A DNA stretch of 61,864 nucleotides, counting the filler, from Platydemus manokwari (Eukaryota), in the NCBI GenBank assembly GCA_037951405.1. It is 5 parts of 5 records of this genome, joined end to end, with 100 filler letters (N's around TTAATTAATTAA, not from the genome) between each part and the next. Parts side by side here need not be neighbours in the genome. Positions count along the whole stretch, not along the records: positions 11,475 to 21,914 come from JBBMOY011123330.1; 4 more parts are not named here. One strand, given 5' to 3'. Shown here one piece after another: positions 11,475-21,914 of this stretch (the first letter of the stretch is position 1; every line of letters begins with the position of its first letter). A model generated the notes under the pieces. That model was not told where the DNA came from and made no database searches. It was given only the letters and a program-made list of their open reading frames with translations. A program made the translations under genes and the position numbers.

Positions 11475-11698
11475 GATCTTCCACGCGTTTTATGTGGTTC
11501 AGAACTCATTTTGAAAACTACGGCGCATCGTTAGCCAGTATATCAATGTTTCTTAAAGTGGTGGCGAAGATATTTTTGAAACGGTTGACTGTAATTGTAA
11601 ACGAATGCATGAGAAATTGTGGAGCACATTGTAAGGTTTGTGGAGGATTGGTAGGGGTTATGATGGGTATAAACTTTTTCAATTTATAAATCATTAAG

Positions 11699-14600
11699 GT
11701 ATAATAGGCCAAAAATGGCATCGAATATTGTCACAAATATTGATCACTAGAAATGCTCAAGATCGTGTAGTATTGAAAGAATTGTCACTAAATTTGTCGA
11801 AACCATTTTACGAAACCATGTTGACAAGTAAAAATATTTATTATCATTTTTTAATTCCTCTGAATTTTTTCTAAATTTTCGATTTAGATCTGAAACAACT
11901 TCAAAATTTTGGTATAAATCTAGTGTTGGGAGATTCTTCAATGGCTATCGCTCAAACAGCATCTTTTCTAAAGATCCCCTACATATCCACAGGCTCATAT
12001 CTATATCAATCAAATAATCCAGCCAATTCTTATATGCCGTATTTTTATTCACTCGTGATACCAGAAAGGATTTATTCACTGGCTGTTCTTAGTATTCTTA
12101 ATCAATTCCAGGTTAAAACTGTTTCCATTATTATAGATTCCAGTGTCGGTAAGAAATGTTTGATTATCGAAATCCGTTGTAATATGGATTTGTTTTTTCA
12201 ATATAAATAGATTACGATAGTTTTGTCAAACCTTTTTTCGACCAAAAATCAATTAGTATTCGAATATGGACTCTCCAAGACAAAATTAGTGAAGATATTC
12301 GTAAGCTCCCAGACCAGCTAGACCAAATACTTGAAGAATCTAGAGCATCAAACATTTGGGATTTTATTGTCAAGGCTAAAATTGGAATAGTGAAAACAAT
12401 GATTTTGAGGGTTTTATTTGTCATTTGGTTATGCCAATCTATTATTTATTGTAGGCCAAATATTATGGGATGCTCGTTCAACCTAATAAGTGGTATTTAC
12501 CATCGTTTCTGTGCCATGACATAAATATCGCAGCTATTCGACAGATTCATTCCAACATCACCATGGTGAATGAACAATGCACAGAATCAATGCTACAGCA
12601 GAACAGCAATTACAGTGATATCGCTATAATGAATAAAGCAGTCCAAATATTTAGAAAAATTGATTGGGAGCTCTCTGCTGAGAAGTTGAATCGCGTAAGC
12701 TTTATATTATTTCTATTTTTAAAATTTTTTTTTCACGATTGGCTTTGTTACCATGACAATATACATGTTTGGTGATGTACCACTCTCTTATAAAAGAAGT
12801 TTTTCGAAGTATTTTATAATAACAGGTTCTAAAACAGGGTGACACGAGTTTGTATGATGATAAAGGTTTACAGATTAAACTACGATTTTCTCTTCATTCA
12901 TTAAATGTCGACGAAACTAAAATGGGAAATCTAAGATTGGTACGATATTGAATTATGTTTGAATTGAAAATAAAATTTCCAAACAGGTTGGAGTGTGGAT
13001 GACCAATCAAAAAGTTTCATCCCTAAACTATTTCTATGAGAAAAACAAGTCAGATGATATACGGTCGACACCAAGCTTTCACATTAGAGTGTCAGCTATC
13101 GAGGTATTTTATTTATTTGGTAAGTACATAAGTTCGTGCGTTTTTTACAATTATGAAGAATACATATTGATCAAGAATAAAAACAATGCAAAAAATTCCA
13201 GATGACAAAATGAGTTTAAGAAATCATTAGAAAAAAACAAATATCTCAGTCTCAATCGGTGAGATATTCTGTGCCACAATCGATCACATCCTTCCACCGT
13301 TCTGGCAGTTTGTCAATCCCATGTTTGAAGAAGCTTGGTGATTTTTGGTAGAAAAATTCTTCAATCCACGTTGTTATTGCTTCTTCTTTTAAAAATGTGA
13401 GATCAGGAAGACGGTTTTGACATGGAGCCGAAAAGATGAAAATATGTTGGGGCTCAGTCAGTTGATGGGGAAGAACTTCCAAGCCAAGATCTTCAATAGC
13501 TAATTTTGTTATTGTGGCGACATGAACATTGTCATGTTGTTCAATTATTTGCCTCTTCTGGTCCTCTTCGCTTTGATTGCAGAGTTCACTCTCTTGAGTC
13601 GTTCACAATAAAGTTCGATATTGATTTTTTGGCTTCTTGAAAAGATTTCGTAATGAATAACATCAACTTGGTCCCACAAAACGCACAACACGATTTTGCG
13701 TTGGTGAACGTCAAGTTTTGCAAGTGGTTGTGGTTGCTTTTGAGGACTTATCCAACAGCAGATTGATGATGAATGAGTAAAGATGCATGAATCGAAACAA
13801 GTTGATTTCTGTGACTTTCTTTGAGAAGGTGAGGTACTCATGATCGTAGCTTTTGAATTTTTCCCATTTTCTTGAGATGTCAAGAAATAGTAGTGTGATC
13901 ACAATCCATGACTTGTCCATGGTCTCGTGTCGATTGACGAGGATCATCATGAATCAATTAGTTCAAACATTCTTCATCAAAGTCACTAGGTCGGCCTGAT
14001 GAAGGTGTTTGAAATAGATAATTCAGCTTAATGAATATAACTCATATCAATTAAAACAAGAAGTTAGTGTGTTTTCTTTACAACAAATAAAACCGCACGA
14101 ATTTATGCACCAATCCAATATTAATAATGGATCTCATTATTTATTGATTAATATTTTTAGGAGCATCCTCATTTAATAGTTCTTCCGAACGGTTCGGCGA
14201 TCGGATATGGTGTTGATATTTTATCGGAACTGAGTAAATTGATGAATTTCACATATTCAATACATCTCACCAATTCAATCGGATCAAAAGATCGTTCAAA
14301 CTGGACTGGAATTGTAGGCGATATCCATTCAAATGTGTGTAACTTTCTGCTAGATTCATTTGCGTACAATGATCGATTATTTAGAGAGCTGATATGAGTC
14401 TTGGCCCACTGGTACAAACGAAAGAAATTGAAGATGTGCTCGATTTCTCTACATCATTTAAACAACGCGAAATCAGCTTGGTTGTCAGAAAATCCACTCC
14501 GTCCACGACATTATTTCAATTTTTTACTCCATTTTCCAATTATGTTTGGATAGTCTGTGTTTCAGCATTAGTATTATTCACTTTAACCATGTGGCTTGTG

Positions 14601-15905
14601 GAACATTTTCACGATGGTGAGCGAAATAGCATTAATAATTGCCCAAAAACTTAAAATATCATATGTTAGCATATTTCCAAAACGAACAGCCATTTCCTCT
14701 GAACCTAAAAGAATCATCATGGATAGCAATAGCCTGTGTATTGAAGCAACAAATGGATATTTTCCCAACATCAATACCAGGCCGGATAATTCATTTTACC
14801 ATTATATTCTTCAGTTTGATCATTATCAGTACCTATACGGCTAATTTAGCAGCATCTCTCACCGTTAAAGTCTCTCCAAATCTAGTGAATTCAGTCGAGG
14901 ATTTGGCCAACTTTTCTCCATCCAGTAAGTTCACTTTTGGAACTGTAATAGACAGTCCGATTCTGGAATTTTTCGAACAATCCGAAATGGAAATATATCG
15001 GAAAATATACAGCTTAATGAAGAATAATCCTCATTGGCTGGTCAATGACTCAAAGGATGGGTATCGAAGAGCTCTAACAGGTACCTGATAATTAGATACT
15101 AGAATTATTCCAATTCATTCTTAGAACCTTATGTGTTTATATGGGATGATTCTGTTAATCAATACGAGATTTCTACTGAGCCCTTTTACAAATGCAATCT
15201 CACTACAGTCGGGACACCGTTTGGGAAACGAAGTTTTGCAATTGGCTTGAGAAATGGAGCTGGATTACTGGAAAAACTTAATATTAATCTCTTAGGCTTG
15301 ATTGAATCCGGAATCAATGGAAATTTGGAGAATAAGTAATTATTGTAATGAGAGAATATATAGAGACCGGCCCTTATATTTATCTATTTGAAATCAATAA
15401 ATATCAATAATCCTTAATTCTTACAACGATAAATACCAAATTATTATTATTACTGCGAGAATTTTAATTTGAATTAAATTTTTAAAGTTTAATTTTATAT
15501 AAAATAATATTAATTTTTTCATATAATTGTATCTAAGATCTAATTTGGTGGCGTGAATTTCTAGTTCGCTTTCAATAAGTGATTTATAAAATACCAATGG
15601 GTTACAATTAATCAATCCATTAATATCTAATTTTCAGATGGTGGCAACAAACATCGATGTGTACAGCTAGTAAATCACAGGTAGATGATCAAAACCCTTT
15701 GTTGATTGATGAAGTTGCTGGTGTATTTTTAATTGTTGTCATCGGAGCCGTCTTGTCTATCGGGTGGTTGATAGGTCAAATATTATTCTACAAATTCAAG
15801 AAACATAAGACGAGAAAGATACAAAAGAAATACATTAAGAAAGAAGCAAACAACCACGAATCAGCTTCAGAACCTCTGAGAAAGGAAGGAAACGGTTTCA
15901 ATTAA
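11699..15905 (+). CDS. Ionotropic glutamate receptor family subunit (ATD, S1, M1-M3, S2, M4); first exon uncertain
   Basis: Phase-consistent exons 11699-11827, 11888-12148, 12211-12410, 12455-12694, 12826-12939, 12987-13103, 14161-14334, 14385-14616, 14670-15080, 15125-15335, 15638-15905. Motifs GYGVDIL, WTGIVG, DFS, TYTANLAA, FIWD, KWW, VAGVF. Confidence 0.93.
13114..14120 (-). mobile_element. Defective mariner transposon in an iGluR intron
   Basis: About 30-bp imperfect TIRs (…cataagttcgtgcgttttt / aaaaccgcacgaatttatg…) bounded by TA. Frameshifted transposase: PSGRP, KIVLCVLWD, QHDN, GIDKLPERWKDVID. Confidence 0.92.
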
Positions 15906-16049
15906 TGTTGGATATTTTTTTTTAATAAATTTTAATGGAACTGTATCTGTAATTTCTAATAAATATGTTTTATTCGACAATTATTCTCAATAATGGGCAG
16001 ATATTTTTCCAATTAATAGACTGGAGAAAATATATCAGTCATAGTTGAA

Positions 16050-16700
16050 GAGATTTGTTTTAATAATAAATTCCACCGATTCGATATCTTGAGCACGATT
16101 TGGTTGATAGTATAAGGTTCTCAACCTTAGCTTTAACAATCTTTACAATGTCATAAGATTGATGACTTTTCTCACTGAAGTCCCTGATGGATGATATTTG
16201 GAGGAGTTAACAAAGCGGCAAGATTCTCTTGAGTTGAATTCAGGAACATTAGCAACCTTGTCTGCTTGTGTTGGATAAAATATCGATCTTATGTAACTGG
16301 TTGTCACTTTCAAATCGTTAAACTAAACTTTCAAATACGTTCTCAAACTTTGCGGACAAGATTTGTATCGATATGTATGTTTCTGCTGCTTGTTGCGATC
16401 TTATTCAAGTTGTAAACCATTCTGAATGTGTACGTTCATTGAAGTTCCTAGCAGTACGCTTTGAACGCAATCAATAAATTACGATTGTTCTGACGTCAAA
16501 TCCTTTCTAATGTGATCATTTCTGAGAGCATTATAGAGCATTAAATTATGATGTTCAAAGGATAATCTTTAAGAATTAAGAAACAATCTACATTAAAGTT
16601 AATAAAGTTGTTAGCAAAAAGACTCAATTATTGAATCGAGCTTCCTAGCGGTTCCCTCATAAAACCCTCATAATTTCTTCATCTTAATATTTTAAGTGGG
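16050..16700 (-). mobile_element. Degenerate LTR-retrotransposon integrase fragment
   Basis: NVPEFNS...SKYHPSG resembles DNGPEF...PYHPQxNG. Confidence 0.35.
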
Positions 16701-17360
16701 TTTAAGACCCATGATTTATATTCGATATTTTTATTGATAAATTAAATTGATTTGGTTTCTTGACACACACACACACACTCCACTGTTCTCCATAGATGAA
16801 TTTCCAGAAAGAATTTTCCCATTAGAACTCTGTCATAATCTGTGAATCCCAGGAAAGAATTAATATTTTAAGAATAGATTTCTATCGAGAGAAATCTTGG
16901 ATATTTGATTCGTTTAATTATTCTGACTAACATATGTTTTAGAAATAATAAATTTTTATGGAATTGATTGGGGTTTTTACGATGAGAATTATCAAAAAAT
17001 CAATACATTATAAAAAAATAATGATTGAGTATTTTTCAATATCGATTGGCTAGAAGTAATTGACACCTCTTTATTATTGGTCAATTATTCCTGTAATTTA
17101 TATTGATTTTAATATTTTAATATCAATTTTTCTTGAACATTTCATAGAATACAAGTATTTTTCAACGTTGGCTCCATAACAGAGATTCCTTACCGGTTTA
17201 TTGATTATTGGTGTCAATAATGATGATCAACTAATGGACAAAGCCTACCCACACGACGAGTTGTGTCTAAATTACCTTGTGAATGGTCCTCATAATTAAG
17301 CAGATGTTTTGACAAATCGATATCACATAAAATGAACAACTATTTATTTTCAGAGTAGTT

Positions 17361-17747
17361 ATGAATATTATTTTCGCCTTGGTTGTTCTATTTATTGGAT
17401 TGTTCCACAGAGCTGATGCTGATCATTGCAAAAGCGATAACCTGATAAAATCTTTGGAATTAGGTGGGATGATGCATGATTTGCTTCGAGCAATGGTATT
17501 GCCAAATCTGGCAATTAATATTCAAAGCCTCCTGGAAGGAATTGTTCCGAAAAGAATTGTTAAAAAAGTTCTTTATATTTTGGAAGATGTTCGATTATTT
17601 TTCAAAGAACTAACCCGCAGTCGTTTCAATTGTTCGTGCAAAGAAGAGATATTGTATACCAGCGAAACGTTAGAACATTTAAATGATTGTGAAAAGAAAC
17701 TTGAAGACTGTGTGGAGGAAAAACACGTTAACGAGAAACATTTATAA
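17361..17747 (+). CDS. 128-aa secreted protein of unknown family
   Basis: Signal peptide MNIIFALVVLFIGLFHRADA, 5 Cys, splice acceptor ttttcag 7 nt before the ATG, AATAAA about 35 nt after the stop. Confidence 0.75.
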   Translation: MNIIFALVVLFIGLFHRADADHCKSDNLIKSLELGGMMHDLLRAMVLPNLAINIQSLLEGIVPKRIVKKVLYILEDVRLFFKELTRSRFNCSCKEEILYTSETLEHLNDCEKKLEDCVEEKHVNEKHL

Positions 17748-18216
17748 AACCCATGAAGATTTTCTAGAAATTTTTTTTACAAATAAAATGATCTTTTTGT
17801 AATAAATACGGATTATTTTGGCTCAATAATTTTTATTTGTTCTTTATTTTCCAGTATCATGTAAGGAGGATATTTAGCCGGAACAGATATTAGTAAATTA
17901 ATAATTATAGCTATTATATTTTAAATTATTATTATTATTACGGTGTATGATTATAAATACATTTTATACACACACACACACAAACTTAAACCATGGGAAC
18001 ATCTAAAACTGTTGGTGCTGGAAAATCATCTCAAAATGATTCCATACAAAATATTTATTTACAAAAAATGTGTTTCAACCAATTTTATCGATTATCCCAA
18101 AACAGACGTAATCAATTTTCATATGCTATTTATAACAAGAATTCATTTAAAACTATAGTAGCTGTTTCTATGGAATCGCTGTCTTGTAGAACAATTGGTT
18201 CAAAAGATTGACCAGG

Positions 18217-19809
18217 CTACGTTTGCCACGATTTGGCACACACAACACACCGACTAATCGAATCTAGAATTTCTTTCATGTTTTCATCGTGCATAATCAA
18301 ATATTGAGATTCTGTTGTTGAATTGAAATTTTGACCAGAAAGACTGCGCAGGTAGTAAGCATTGGCGTCGGCCCAATGATGACAGGAAGACATGCCATTG
18401 TTACATTCGACTAATGGGTGGAACGAGAAGTGCTGAATGCAGCTACCTGGCGAAGACAAAAGCTGACCTCCACTTTTGCTTGCGCTGGAATGCTAAAAAT
18501 ATCAATTAAAATAAGGTGAGATTTATTCAAATTTGTAAACGATTTATAATTTTTCGAAGCTCTTCATTAAACCATTTATCTTTCATTTACCCCCCCCCCC
18601 ACCCGTATATTTAATATTACAATTTTAACGAAATAATCAAAAGTATCGACATATATTTTACAGAATAAATAAGATAATAAGAGTGGAGTTATAAAGTTCT
18701 GCATTGCACTAGAACAGATTTATTAGTTTACTTATAAACTTTGTCTTGCGAAATTAAAAATGTAAGAAAAGCGACTTTACGAATTCCAATACACGAGTAA
18801 AAGATATCAATCCAACTATATGATTCGTCTAAATGATGTTTCCAACATTTATAAATCAATGACATACCTCGAATGAAACAAAGAATTCAAATAAAATGTT
18901 TTTGTGAGGTTTATTTTAAATGAAACAAAATGATCTTTTAAAAATGCGATAAATCATTAAAATTTAAATGATATGAAAACTATTTATAAATTATGTTAAA
19001 AATAAATATATCTTATCAATATTTATAAAAGGATCTTGCTAAACAATACTGTTAAACTTTCAGTATAAAAATTATTAAAATAATTTTGAAATTTTCGTTA
19101 AAAAAGATATAATATAAAAATGTGGGCAATTTTTGATAAAAAATGTGGACAAGTCTGACTGGACAAAATGGGTTTTAAAATTTAAATTGGTTTGAAAATA
19201 GTTGTAATAAAAATAAATTATTGTTCGGATAAAAATGACTTCTTATTTAAAACTCTAGGATGAAGAAATGTTGGCAACTAAAAATCATGAAAAATAAACC
19301 GAAGTGAATTTAAACTTCAAGAATAAACCTTTACAATGGCGGTCTTTATAAATATTCGAAATGGATAATGATGGCATAGAATTGAAGTAAATGTAAGATT
19401 AAATTAAAACTAAAAATAAGCTAGCAAACAGAATTTAGACCAAGTCCAATTAAGTCAAAATAAAATAATCTTTATAAAAATCTCGAAAAGATATTTTGTC
19501 ACTCATTGAAAACGATCTACAAAGTCATGACATCCACTTATATTTATACAATTTTTTTATACCAAATGAAACTTTTATATAAAATTTAATCTATAAAAAT
19601 TTTAATTCAATTTGAAGTGCTCAAAGTCAACGCAGAGCAATCTAAAAAATTTATTTCAGCAAATTGAATTATGATGTCTAATCGGTAACATCTAGTTATG
19701 TTACACGGTGACAAATTATTGGCACTAAAAATCATTTAGAAAGATTTCATATTCGACATAATGAAACATGTGAGAAAAGTATAAATTAATCAATAATTGT
19801 TCGAAAATT

Positions 19810-19854
<45 letters not shown>

Positions 19855-21197
19855 CATCACAAAACTGTAACCCTTCCACAACTCTATCCAATTCTGCGGA
19901 CAAGAAATATCGATATATCTCTCGGTTTGTGAATGAAAGGCATAAGGTTGGGTAGGATTCTCACATACAACACATTTAGATAATCTTTTGTTCATGCTAG
20001 TTATATCAACTGGCCCCATAGATGCAGGCTCTAGAGAACTCAACCAATACGTTCTGTCCGATCTTATTCCAGAACTGCAAGATCCATCTCTCAGGCAGTG
20101 AGCAAACGGCATGAGACTAAATGTTTTGAGGCAAGAACTTGCACTACCTATAATTAAAACCAATGCAAATTTTAAATCAAACGTATGCTTAGCAGTGCAA
20201 AGTTCAGAGTAACGAATCCAAAATTAAAAAATAAGATGATAAAACAAACTGTTTAAATTTATTGTTTAAAGTTATCATTTAACACCTTAAAATATCAACT
20301 TACCAAGATCCATGGAGTGCAACTGACCTCCACCATTCATCATAACAAAGCTGTAGCCATCATATACCTTTTCTGAATAACCAGGACATCTGAGATTTTT
20401 GGTATCAGAGTCTTGAATGTGATACGAGAAAAGTACTGTTGATGTAATTATGTTTGCTGCTGGCCGTCCTATTACACCTCTACTTCCTTTAATGCCTTTT
20501 TCACCAGGTTTCCCAATCTCACCAGGTTTGCCTTTGAAACCTTTTATTCCACCATTACCCTTATCTCCTTCTAATCCTGTTTCATAACTCTTTTCACCTT
20601 GAGCCCCATTAACTCCTTTATCACCCTTAGTTCCTCTCTCTGGTAAATCTCCAAAACTTCCTTTCTGGCCTTTAGTACCTTCATCGCCCTTTTCACCTTG
20701 ATCACCTTTATCTCCTCTACTTCCATCGCCAATTTGACCTTGAAAACCTTTAAGACCTTTAAGTCCTTTATTTCCTGTCAGGCCATCATCTCCATTTAAT
20801 CCTGGTGATCCATGATTTCCTTTCAGTCCACTATTTCCTTTTATACCCTTTATTCCGCTTTCTCCTAACATTCCTTTTGGACCCAATGAGCCTTTATCCC
20901 CCTTGCTACCTTTATCACCCATAAATCCTTTGATTCCAACTATTCCACTTTCACCTGTATCACCTTTAATTCCCTTTCTACCCGGTGCTCCGTTTGGTCC
21001 GTTATTTCCTTTATTTCCTTGATCGCCAAGTATTCCAGGAAAACCTACAGTATCGAGGTATTCAAACGAATATCGTAAATGTACTCACCAACCTTTTTTT
21101 CCTTGCTTTCCACGTGATCCAATTTCACCATCAATACCATCATCTCCACCTCCTGGATAACCTTTGAAACCTTTCCGACCATGTTTCCCGTGGATTC
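18217..21197 (-). CDS. Type IV collagen-like chain (Gly-X-Y plus tandem C4/NC1 domain); 5' exon(s) not found
   Basis: Exons 21197-21093, 21044-20304, 20147-19855, 18492-18217. About 75 Gly-X-Y triplets; NC1 with 12 Cys (GYSFVM twice, SPGSC, SKCVVC, SRCVVC). Confidence 0.92.
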
Positions 21198-21914
21198 CTT
21201 AATATAAATGTCAATTCTGATATTTTTATGTATCAATGTCTTGAGTGAAGATATGATTAATTTACAACACCACAATAATAATGATGTTTTCCAGATTCAT
21301 ATATACATTTCGATTGATTAAAACAAAAACGATTATTAAGAATTTTCAAATAAATAGTAGTCTATAGGAGAGTTGATATCATGACAACCGTTGATGTAAT
21401 TAAGATTACAAAGGATAAAATTGGTCTGCTAAATCAAATCGATTGCTGAAGTTAATTCCTTTGAGAGTAGATCAATATATTTGAATACATTTGGGGTATT
21501 AGAGTGTGCGTCGGATATTAAAAATCCCAATATAATTTAATTAGTGAAGTCTGTTTGGGTGTTTTACACACATATACTTACTGAGTCATAGAGATGTGAT
21601 TATCTATTAATCAGTATCAGTATAAAACGAATATTACAACTGATCAATTGCACTCGACATAAATCGATAACTCTTATTAGGACTTTCAAAATCGTAGCAT
21701 CCAGTAGATGTTGAGCACATGCCAAGCATGCAAACAAATGACTATTACTATTGTTTCAAACATGAAATTTTGAAAGTGAGGCCTATTTAAGACCAAAGTG
21801 CTGTATTAGTGCTGAGCAACATTTGATAAATCAATAAATATCTGGATTAACTAGATATAAATAGTTATCGTTCTTTAAATATCGTCTATGTTAGTTATAT
21901 TAAAATATATGAAC

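Follow-up and report, generated by a model that had tools for sequence, protein, structure and literature searches.

A subunit of the ionotropic glutamate receptor (iGluR) family, whose ligand-binding cleft is without the residues that anchor the carboxyl group of an amino-acid agonist, is encoded in a stretch of Platydemus manokwari DNA of 61,864 nucleotides (GenBank assembly GCA_037951405.1), which consists of five parts of the genome joined end to end and is called the window below. The gene was located on the plus strand at positions 11559-15905, within the gene-dense and AT-rich (about 32% GC) piece 11475-21914 (JBBMOY011123330.1). Its product is probably a functional, amino-acid-blind and divergent non-NMDA (AKDF-like) iGluR subunit, whatever its mode of action, and the residues found in the cleft make it likely that canonical binding of glutamate and glycine has been abolished.

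Residues of the ligand-binding cleft and the pore

Residue numbering follows GluA2. The S1 peptide GPLVQTKEIEDVLDFS (14403-14450, in the frame of 14385), the S2 peptide GTVIDSPILEFF (14939-14974) and YVFIWDD (15130-15150), from which a preliminary description of this DNA had derived the loss of the agonist-binding residues, were all present where that description had placed them. When the exons were compared with solved structures by HMMER, the segment RADMSLGPLVQTKEIEDVLDFS of the S1 exon was aligned without gaps to GluN2C, the Thr being matched by Val and the Arg by Ile, and the alignments of the segment FGTVIDSPILEFF of the S2 exon to YGTLDSGSTKEFF of GluA3 and of YVFIWDDSV to HAFIWDSAV of GluN1 were likewise free of gaps. 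A 405-residue protein known only from UniParc (P0008), which was 73% identical in an exhaustive HMMER search with the 139-residue M2-M3-S2 exon, was aligned in the same manner to APLTITLVREEVIDFS, GSTKEFF and YAYLLES of GluA2.

In the window protein, Thr480 is replaced by Val (GTA, 14412-14414), Arg485 by Ile (ATT, 14427-14429), Gly653-Ser654-Thr655 by Ser-Pro-Ile (14954-14962, with the Pro and Ile of 654 and 655 at 14957-14962) and Leu704-Glu705 by Trp-Asp (15142-15147; Asp codon, 15145-15147). Met708 is replaced by Val and Tyr732 by Phe (second S2 exon), and the lid residue Tyr450 corresponded to Ile (codon ATC; Table 1) in a MAFFT alignment of 121 sequences. The residues reported earlier at 480, 485, 654 and 655 were thus confirmed by ungapped alignments to solved GluA2, GluA3, GluN1 and GluN2C, as was the retention of an acidic residue at 705, an Asp aligned to GluN1; at position 485 these alignments held Ile, and neither Arg nor Lys.

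In GluA2 and GluN1 structures, the guanidinium of Arg485, the hydroxyl of Thr480 and the backbone NH of Ser654 bind the alpha-carboxylate of the ligand, and Pro478 and Asp705 bind its alpha-amino group. Arg485, the acidic residue 705 and Thr/Ser480, which form the backbone-anchoring set, are Ile, Asp and Val in the window protein, the acidic residue being the sole survivor, and since a Pro at 654 has no backbone NH, the carboxylate contact at this position would be gone as well. Cross-cleft residues of the E402/T686 type are kept. Across 204 animal iGluR genes, 97% have the Arg in question (R523 in GluN1), and neither glycine nor glutamate activates GluN1 carrying R523K at less than 3 mM (bioRxiv 10.1101/2023.08.03.551817). 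Since even R523K blocks the activation of GluN1, and the Val and Pro changes add to it, canonical amino-acid binding should be abolished in the window protein. The earlier proposal that glutamate and glycine do not gate this receptor is therefore well founded, with the contacts of Arg485, Thr480 and Ser654 gone and the R-to-K change of GluN1 as a precedent.

Among the 121 nearest library representatives aligned with MAFFT, the column of Arg485 held Arg in 114 of the 117 rows bearing a residue, and the rows without Arg were P0008 and two unrelated proteins. Basic residues were found at two other places: Leu483 is replaced by Lys (14421-14423), with Arg at the same position in P0008, and the Q/R site of the pore is occupied by Lys (AAG, 14744-14746), which P0008 has too. 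Both are rare, Lys or Arg at 483 occurring in six and Lys at the Q/R site in three of the 121 representatives, and the combination of Ile485, Val480, Pro654, Ile450 and Lys586 was found in none of them except P0008.

The ATT codon at position 485 is at least two base changes away from every Arg codon. Contigs of a public run (X1), which were assembled separately and span 14161-15498, differed from the window at only one of 1338 bases, namely a synonymous change at 14573 (the window has A and the X1 contig G; GTA/GTG, Val in M1). The contig was identical at ATT, which speaks against the sequencing error that had been raised for this codon. As run X1 possibly comes from the same sample as the window, this agreement excludes an assembly slip and adds no independent biology.

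Closest relative and conservation

The window protein and P0008 are identical at Thr480, Arg485, Ser654, Thr655, Leu704, Glu705 and the Q/R site, that is, they share the same replacements there. At the 14 contact-equivalent positions, 11 residues were identical and the other three differed conservatively (V/I, M/L and T/S). Identity between the two proteins was 71% in the ligand-binding domain (154 of 217 residues), 69% in the membrane domain (74 of 107) and 38% in the C-terminal cytoplasmic tail. The ligand-binding and membrane domains are conserved to the same degree, which argues against decay. Within the former, the residues at most three positions from the 14 canonical contact sites were identical in 48 of 58 cases (83%) as compared with 106 of 159 (67%) elsewhere in the domain (Fisher p = 0.027).

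The window gene was searched with one exon at a time, and P0008 stood in as an uninterrupted sequence in the PDB search, the phylogenetic analysis and the modelling of the fold. An AlphaFold model of P0008, based on an alignment of 76 rows, had a mean pLDDT of 89.3 and a pTM of 0.75, and pLDDT exceeded 90 in M1, M3, M4 and the pore helix. Its best Foldseek matches were chains of AMPA receptors comprising the ligand-binding and transmembrane domains (LBD-TMD), with E = 3e-28 and TM up to 0.68. As modelled, the iGluR fold is intact; the structural match speaks to the fold only and not to the content of the cleft.

The next match in the exhaustive search was a 122-residue exon (P0009) with 48% identity, and the remaining matches reached at most about 45%. 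The P0009 exon indicates that the subfamily is present in at least a third organism. It is the single exon on a 904-bp environmental contig (ENA ERZ27295666; L001 392-760), and it encodes DSGILEFF in S2 and Gln at the Q/R site, whereas S1 is absent from this contig. The third-best match, P0010 of Macrostomum, was considered as a member of the clade and rejected, being a canonical receptor with Arg, GST and LLE. A word-index search with the largest exon returned only fragments of 33-42% identity, and with P0008 as the query the nearest match was from Capitella (34%), under a length filter of 223-709 residues that would hide full-length kin. An alignment query composed of a 561-residue cnidarian scaffold, P0008 and five LBD/TMD exons returned only kin of the scaffold and canonical receptors; P0008 itself was unlisted, so that this result is uninformative on orthologues.

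Family placement and ancestry of the cleft

The earlier assignment to the iGluR family was upheld by Pfam matches on single exons (Lig_chan, PF00060; Lig_chan-Glu_bd, PF10613; and, in the N-terminal part, ANF_receptor, PF01094), together with the gate motif, the pore loop and the membrane helices; P0008 carries PF00060 and PF10613. Among solved structures in the PDB, AMPA receptors matched P0008 best (E = 8e-57), and every nameable one of the best 150 library matches was of the AKDF type. Identity was 30-40% to AMPA-, kainate- and delta-like receptors and 30-42% to the closest relatives among canonical iGluRs, and exons S1b and S2b gave marginally best scores with NMDA subunits. The protein is called AKDF-like here because of the overall similarity of P0008 to solved structures, not because of its position in a tree.

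In a FastTree analysis, the clade was placed beside delta-like sequences of amphioxus, sea star, acorn worm and nemertean. Under the C20 mixture model of IQ-TREE, the window exon was joined to P0008 with full support, the stem of the two being 1.96 changes per column long, and this pair fell inside an all-spiralian set of receptors with a support of 84. The set comprised sequences of nemerteans (Lineus and Tubulanus), annelids (Capitella and Owenia) and molluscs (Pecten, Ostrea, Elysia and Octopus). Approximately unbiased (AU) tests rejected neither the delta-like placement (p = 0.42) nor the AMPA+kainate placement (p = 0.43), in trees that held no labelled NMDA, Epsilon, Lambda or IR sequences as a root.

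Most of the spiralian neighbours share V650, S653, I/V655, W704, D705 and V708 with the window protein, and all of them retain Arg485, Thr/Ser480 and Phe/Tyr450. Ser653 together with a non-polar residue at 655 is a predictor of glycine-binding iGluRs (PMC6307864; PMC8437780). Since the nearest Arg-bearing relatives share them, Ile655 and the Trp-Asp motif would have been inherited from glycine-type ancestors. The preliminary description had counted positions 654 and 655 together as a loss; this stands for S654P, which is specific to the lineage, whereas Ile655, like Ser653 and Trp-Asp, appears to be ancestral. By the same comparison, the changes specific to this lineage comprise R485I, T480V, Y450I and S654P, together with the basic residue at 483 (Lys/Arg) and the Lys of the Q/R site.

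Gene structure and integrity

An exon-by-exon rebuild of the receptor gene gave 12 exons in the piece (Table 1). All acceptors are AG and all donors GT, the codon phases are all compatible, no in-frame stop codon occurs across 784 codons, and the open reading frame (ORF) ends with TAA (15903-15905) in the last exon. At three split codons or junctions, the residues agree with P0008. The previous statement that the gene was intact over 11 exons was thus right as to intactness, whereas the exons in the piece number 12 and the 5' end lies beyond the edge at 11475. About 355 residues of the N-terminal part precede S1. An upstream coding exon was sought in 11475-11558 and none fits; because of this, and because the first exon begins mid-codon, the start codon and signal peptide are taken to be cut off by the edge of the piece.

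Ten of the 11 introns span 44-302 nt and the remaining one is 1057 nt long (13104-14160). It contains, on the minus strand at 13252-13950, a decayed mariner-type transposase with broken frames (Pfam Transposase_1, E = 4e-16), and the presence of this remnant explains the length of about 1 kb. The last intron holds a short AT-rich element at 15459-15517, whose depth in the X1 contig was about 2477 as compared with about 16 on the flanks; it is therefore a high-copy repeat in the genome.

In the encoded protein, the N-terminal domain is followed by the S1-S2 clamshell, by three membrane helices with a pore loop and by a basic tail that is short and has no PDZ-type ending. The N-terminal match to PF01094 was marginal in a scan that covered one exon singly. 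The gate motif is TYTANLAAS in the window gene and SYTANLAAY in P0008, as compared with SYTANLAAF in the family. Since the gate motif, the Cys pair of S2, KWW, M4 and the N-terminal domain are present, the protein should still assemble as an iGluR subunit. Judged from its sequence, the gene is real, intact and selectively maintained.

Table 1 Exons of the receptor gene in the piece 11475-21914 and the evidence for each (ATD, N-terminal domain)
Feature	Position	Strand	Evidence
First coding exon in the piece, ATD	11559..11630	+	AG acceptor, GTAAGG donor, no stop, phase fits next exon; frame and splice signals only
ATD exon	11751..11827	+	AG/GT, phases consistent, no stops
ATD exon with ANF_receptor	11888..12148	+	PF01094, E = 5.8e-6, 26.0 bits vs cut-off of 25.4 (scan of 11890-12147); splice check
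ATD exon	12211..12389	+	Splice/frame check
ATD exon	12455..12694	+	Splice/frame check
ATD exon	12826..12939	+	Splice/frame check
End of ATD, linker and start of S1 (..FHIRVSAIE)	12987..13103	+	Splice/frame check; followed by the 1057-nt intron
S1 exon a, with Ile (ATC, 14278-14280) at Tyr450	14161..14334	+	Pfam Lig_chan-Glu_bd (PF10613), E = 3.5e-8, 34 bits
S1 exon b and M1	14385..14616	+	Ungapped HMMER alignments to GluN2C, GluN1 and GluA2
M2 pore loop, M3 and first part of S2	14670..15080	+	Pfam Lig_chan (PF00060), E = 6.7e-16 (scan of 14669-15085); GluA3 and GluK3, E = 1e-18
Second part of S2, with first Cys of the conserved S2 pair	15125..15335	+	GluN1 alignment, E = 5e-5
KWW motif, second Cys, M4, basic C-terminal tail, TAA	15638..15905	+	Aligns with P0008 and with M4 of GluA2

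Proposed function of the subunit and alternative explanations

The history proposed for this subunit would begin with a glycine-type pocket (Ser653, a non-polar residue at 655 and Trp704-Asp705). The lineage would then have lost all of the alpha-carboxylate anchors, with Arg485 changed to Ile, the hydroxyl of Thr480 to Val and the NH of Ser654 to Pro, and also the aromatic lid, with Tyr450 changed to Ile, and the pore would have acquired Lys at the Q/R site. Glutamate or glycine could not open such a subunit in the canonical way, and its clamshell would still be under constraint.

A positive charge at the Q/R site, as in edited GluA2(R), lowers the conductance of homomers, and subunits of this kind work mainly in heteromers. 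The genomic Lys at this site resembles GluA2(R) and so tilts the interpretation towards a subunit working with canonical partners. By this analogy, use in a heteromeric channel is most likely, in which the protein may be either an agonist-blind, pore-shaping partner or a binder of a carboxylate-free ligand. Its clamshell may accordingly be silent, permanently engaged, for which the GluN1 D732L/F mutants and the leak channel of Trichoplax are precedents, or able to bind such a ligand. That the amino-acid-blind subunit is a sensor of a non-amino-acid ligand is a narrower claim and is put forward only as a minor possibility.

Several points weigh against this interpretation. The segments lining the pocket are the structural core of the clamshell, so that their extra conservation shows constraint on the cleft and not ligand binding. 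P0008 is the sole close relative found, and it is known as a protein, without a DNA record. A run of RNA holding the stretch was sought and none was found, the sole run with the stretch (X1) consisting of contigs and not being recorded as RNA. In addition, the conserved basic residue (Lys; Arg in P0008) two positions before the lost Arg might reach the cleft.

One alternative is an IR-like chemosensory receptor, in which the hydrophobic cleft with Asp705 and the carbonyl of Pro478 would bind a carboxylate-free ligand (e.g. an amine), probably together with a co-receptor. This explanation, which overlaps with the amino-acid-blind subunit as its more specific branch, is conceivable but rather unlikely. 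Several glutamate-contact residues are gone, which is the feature separating IRs from iGluRs (PMC2924276); the surroundings of the cleft are better conserved than other parts of the ligand-binding domain; and Asp705 and the cross-cleft residues are kept. A language-model feature search also gave 'Variant Ionotropic Glutamate Receptor' as the cluster nearest to P0008 (score of 0.97), which is a lead only. However, a recognisable N-terminal domain (PF01094) speaks against an IR, and the sequences that match best belong to canonical AMPA-, kainate- and delta-like receptors and not to IRs; for these two reasons the window protein was not filed as an IR. The Lys at the Q/R site speaks against a well-conducting homomer. 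A doubtful variant, which we propose tentatively, is that a non-amino-acid iGluR arose independently of the IRs, in a possibly spiralian lineage that is poorly sampled, from an AKDF subunit that bore an N-terminal domain and a glycine-type cleft, the cleft becoming carboxylate-free and hydrophobic, keeping only its amine-binding half and now sensing an amine-like ligand or another one without a carboxylate.

It is improbable that glycine, D-serine or another amino acid is still bound in an ordinary agonist-gated receptor, with Lys/Arg483 or an anion standing in for Arg485. The remaining glycine-type signature (S653, I655, W704 and D705) is intact and a basic residue at 483 is conserved, being Lys in the window protein and Arg in P0008, but three carboxylate contacts are lost jointly through R485I, T480V and S654P, and R-to-K at the same site abolishes the activation of GluN1 below 3 mM. 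In GluA2, moreover, residue 483 faces the dimer interface and not the cleft, as the non-desensitising mutant L483Y shows. A young pseudogene or an unexpressed copy with a pocket made odd by relaxed constraint is the most improbable explanation: no RNA evidence was found, the branch of the clade is very long (a stem of 1.96 changes per column) and an intron holds a transposon remnant, but 784 codons are free of stops at about 32% GC, where roughly 7% stops would be expected in random codons as estimated from base composition, all 11 introns are AG/GT with consistent phases, the pocket residues are kept in P0008 at 27% divergence, and the functional domains are far better conserved than the tail (71% and 69% vs 38%).

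Other features of the piece

A collagen IV-like gene, which may encode a type IV or a short-chain spongin-like collagen, was seen on the minus strand at 18217-20922 and beyond. In this gene, a Lys-rich, Pro-poor Gly-X-Y exon leads into a C4/NC1 domain (20287-20922), and two more C4 exons lie at about 19860-20163 and 18217-18459. One of its introns contains a perfect (ATA)14 microsatellite (19811-19853), which appears as a poly-Ile run in the ORF list. Between the receptor and collagen genes, a complete ORF of 128 residues on the plus strand (17361-17747), with a signal-peptide-like N-terminus, several Cys and no Pfam family, may be a gene for a small secreted protein. An Rfam scan of the piece 11475-21914 gave no match.

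Comparison with known systems

The window gene is a further, very divergent case of the catalogued full-length iGluRs without Arg485, which belongs to another lineage and whose descent from the glycine type can still be read; it is not a new class. The case is less rare than the preliminary description had implied, since 28 of 122 iGluRs with N-terminal domains are already known to be without R485/E705, many of them amphioxus Phi or cnidarian NMDA-like proteins (Ramos-Vicente et al. 2018, PMC6307864). Few residues of the family are as strongly conserved as Arg485, and full-length iGluRs without it are few and have no function reported in the literature surveyed. Together, the window gene and P0008 form a small natural experiment, in which the changes specific to the lineage number four in the cleft and one in the pore. 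As their ancestry is readable, back-mutation could tell which of the changes abolish agonist gating, and co-expression could tell silent partners, constitutively engaged partners and sensors of a new ligand apart.

Like the Arg485/Glu705-deficient iGluRs (amphioxus Phi and NMDA-Cnidaria), the window protein is a full-length, non-IR receptor with its anchoring residues replaced. Gln is absent from the Q/R site of the window protein, and Ramos-Vicente et al. found no Phi subunit that has it there (PMC6307864). Those receptors come from cephalochordates and cnidarians, whereas the nearest group of the window protein in the best tree is spiralian; Phi and its sister class Zeta have been found in molluscs (Zeng et al., PMC8437780).

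The protostome IRs (Benton 2009; Croset 2010) likewise derive from iGluRs and are without at least one glutamate-contact residue, and they detect non-amino-acid ligands. They are set apart from iGluRs by the lost glutamate-contact residues and the usual lack of an N-terminal domain, which among Drosophila IRs is found only in the co-receptors IR8a and IR25a (Croset et al., PMC2924276). Most IRs are thus without this domain, and they are very divergent, whereas the window protein keeps the N-terminal domain and a near-canonical gate, in a comparison that held no IR references.

GluN1 and the Phi/Delta-like AKDF receptors, whose clefts are of the glycine type, have Ser653, non-polar 655 and the Trp-Asp of 704-705 in common with the window protein, and the best solved match of the S2b exon was GluN1 (FIWDSAV vs FIWDDSV in the window). 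Receptors of the glycine type retain an aromatic residue at 450 besides Arg485 and Thr/Ser480, whereas the window protein has lost all three. In the GluN1 D732L/F mutants and the AKDF leak channel of Trichoplax, a hydrophobic change in the cleft results in a subunit that needs no agonist, with the heteromer gated by the partner (Seljeset et al., bioRxiv 10.1101/2023.08.03.551817). The change in these systems is at the acidic position 705/732, whereas the window protein keeps Asp there and has changed on the carboxylate side. With Q/R-edited GluA2(R), finally, the window protein shares a positive charge in the pore, which in its case is a genomically encoded Lys and not an edited Arg.

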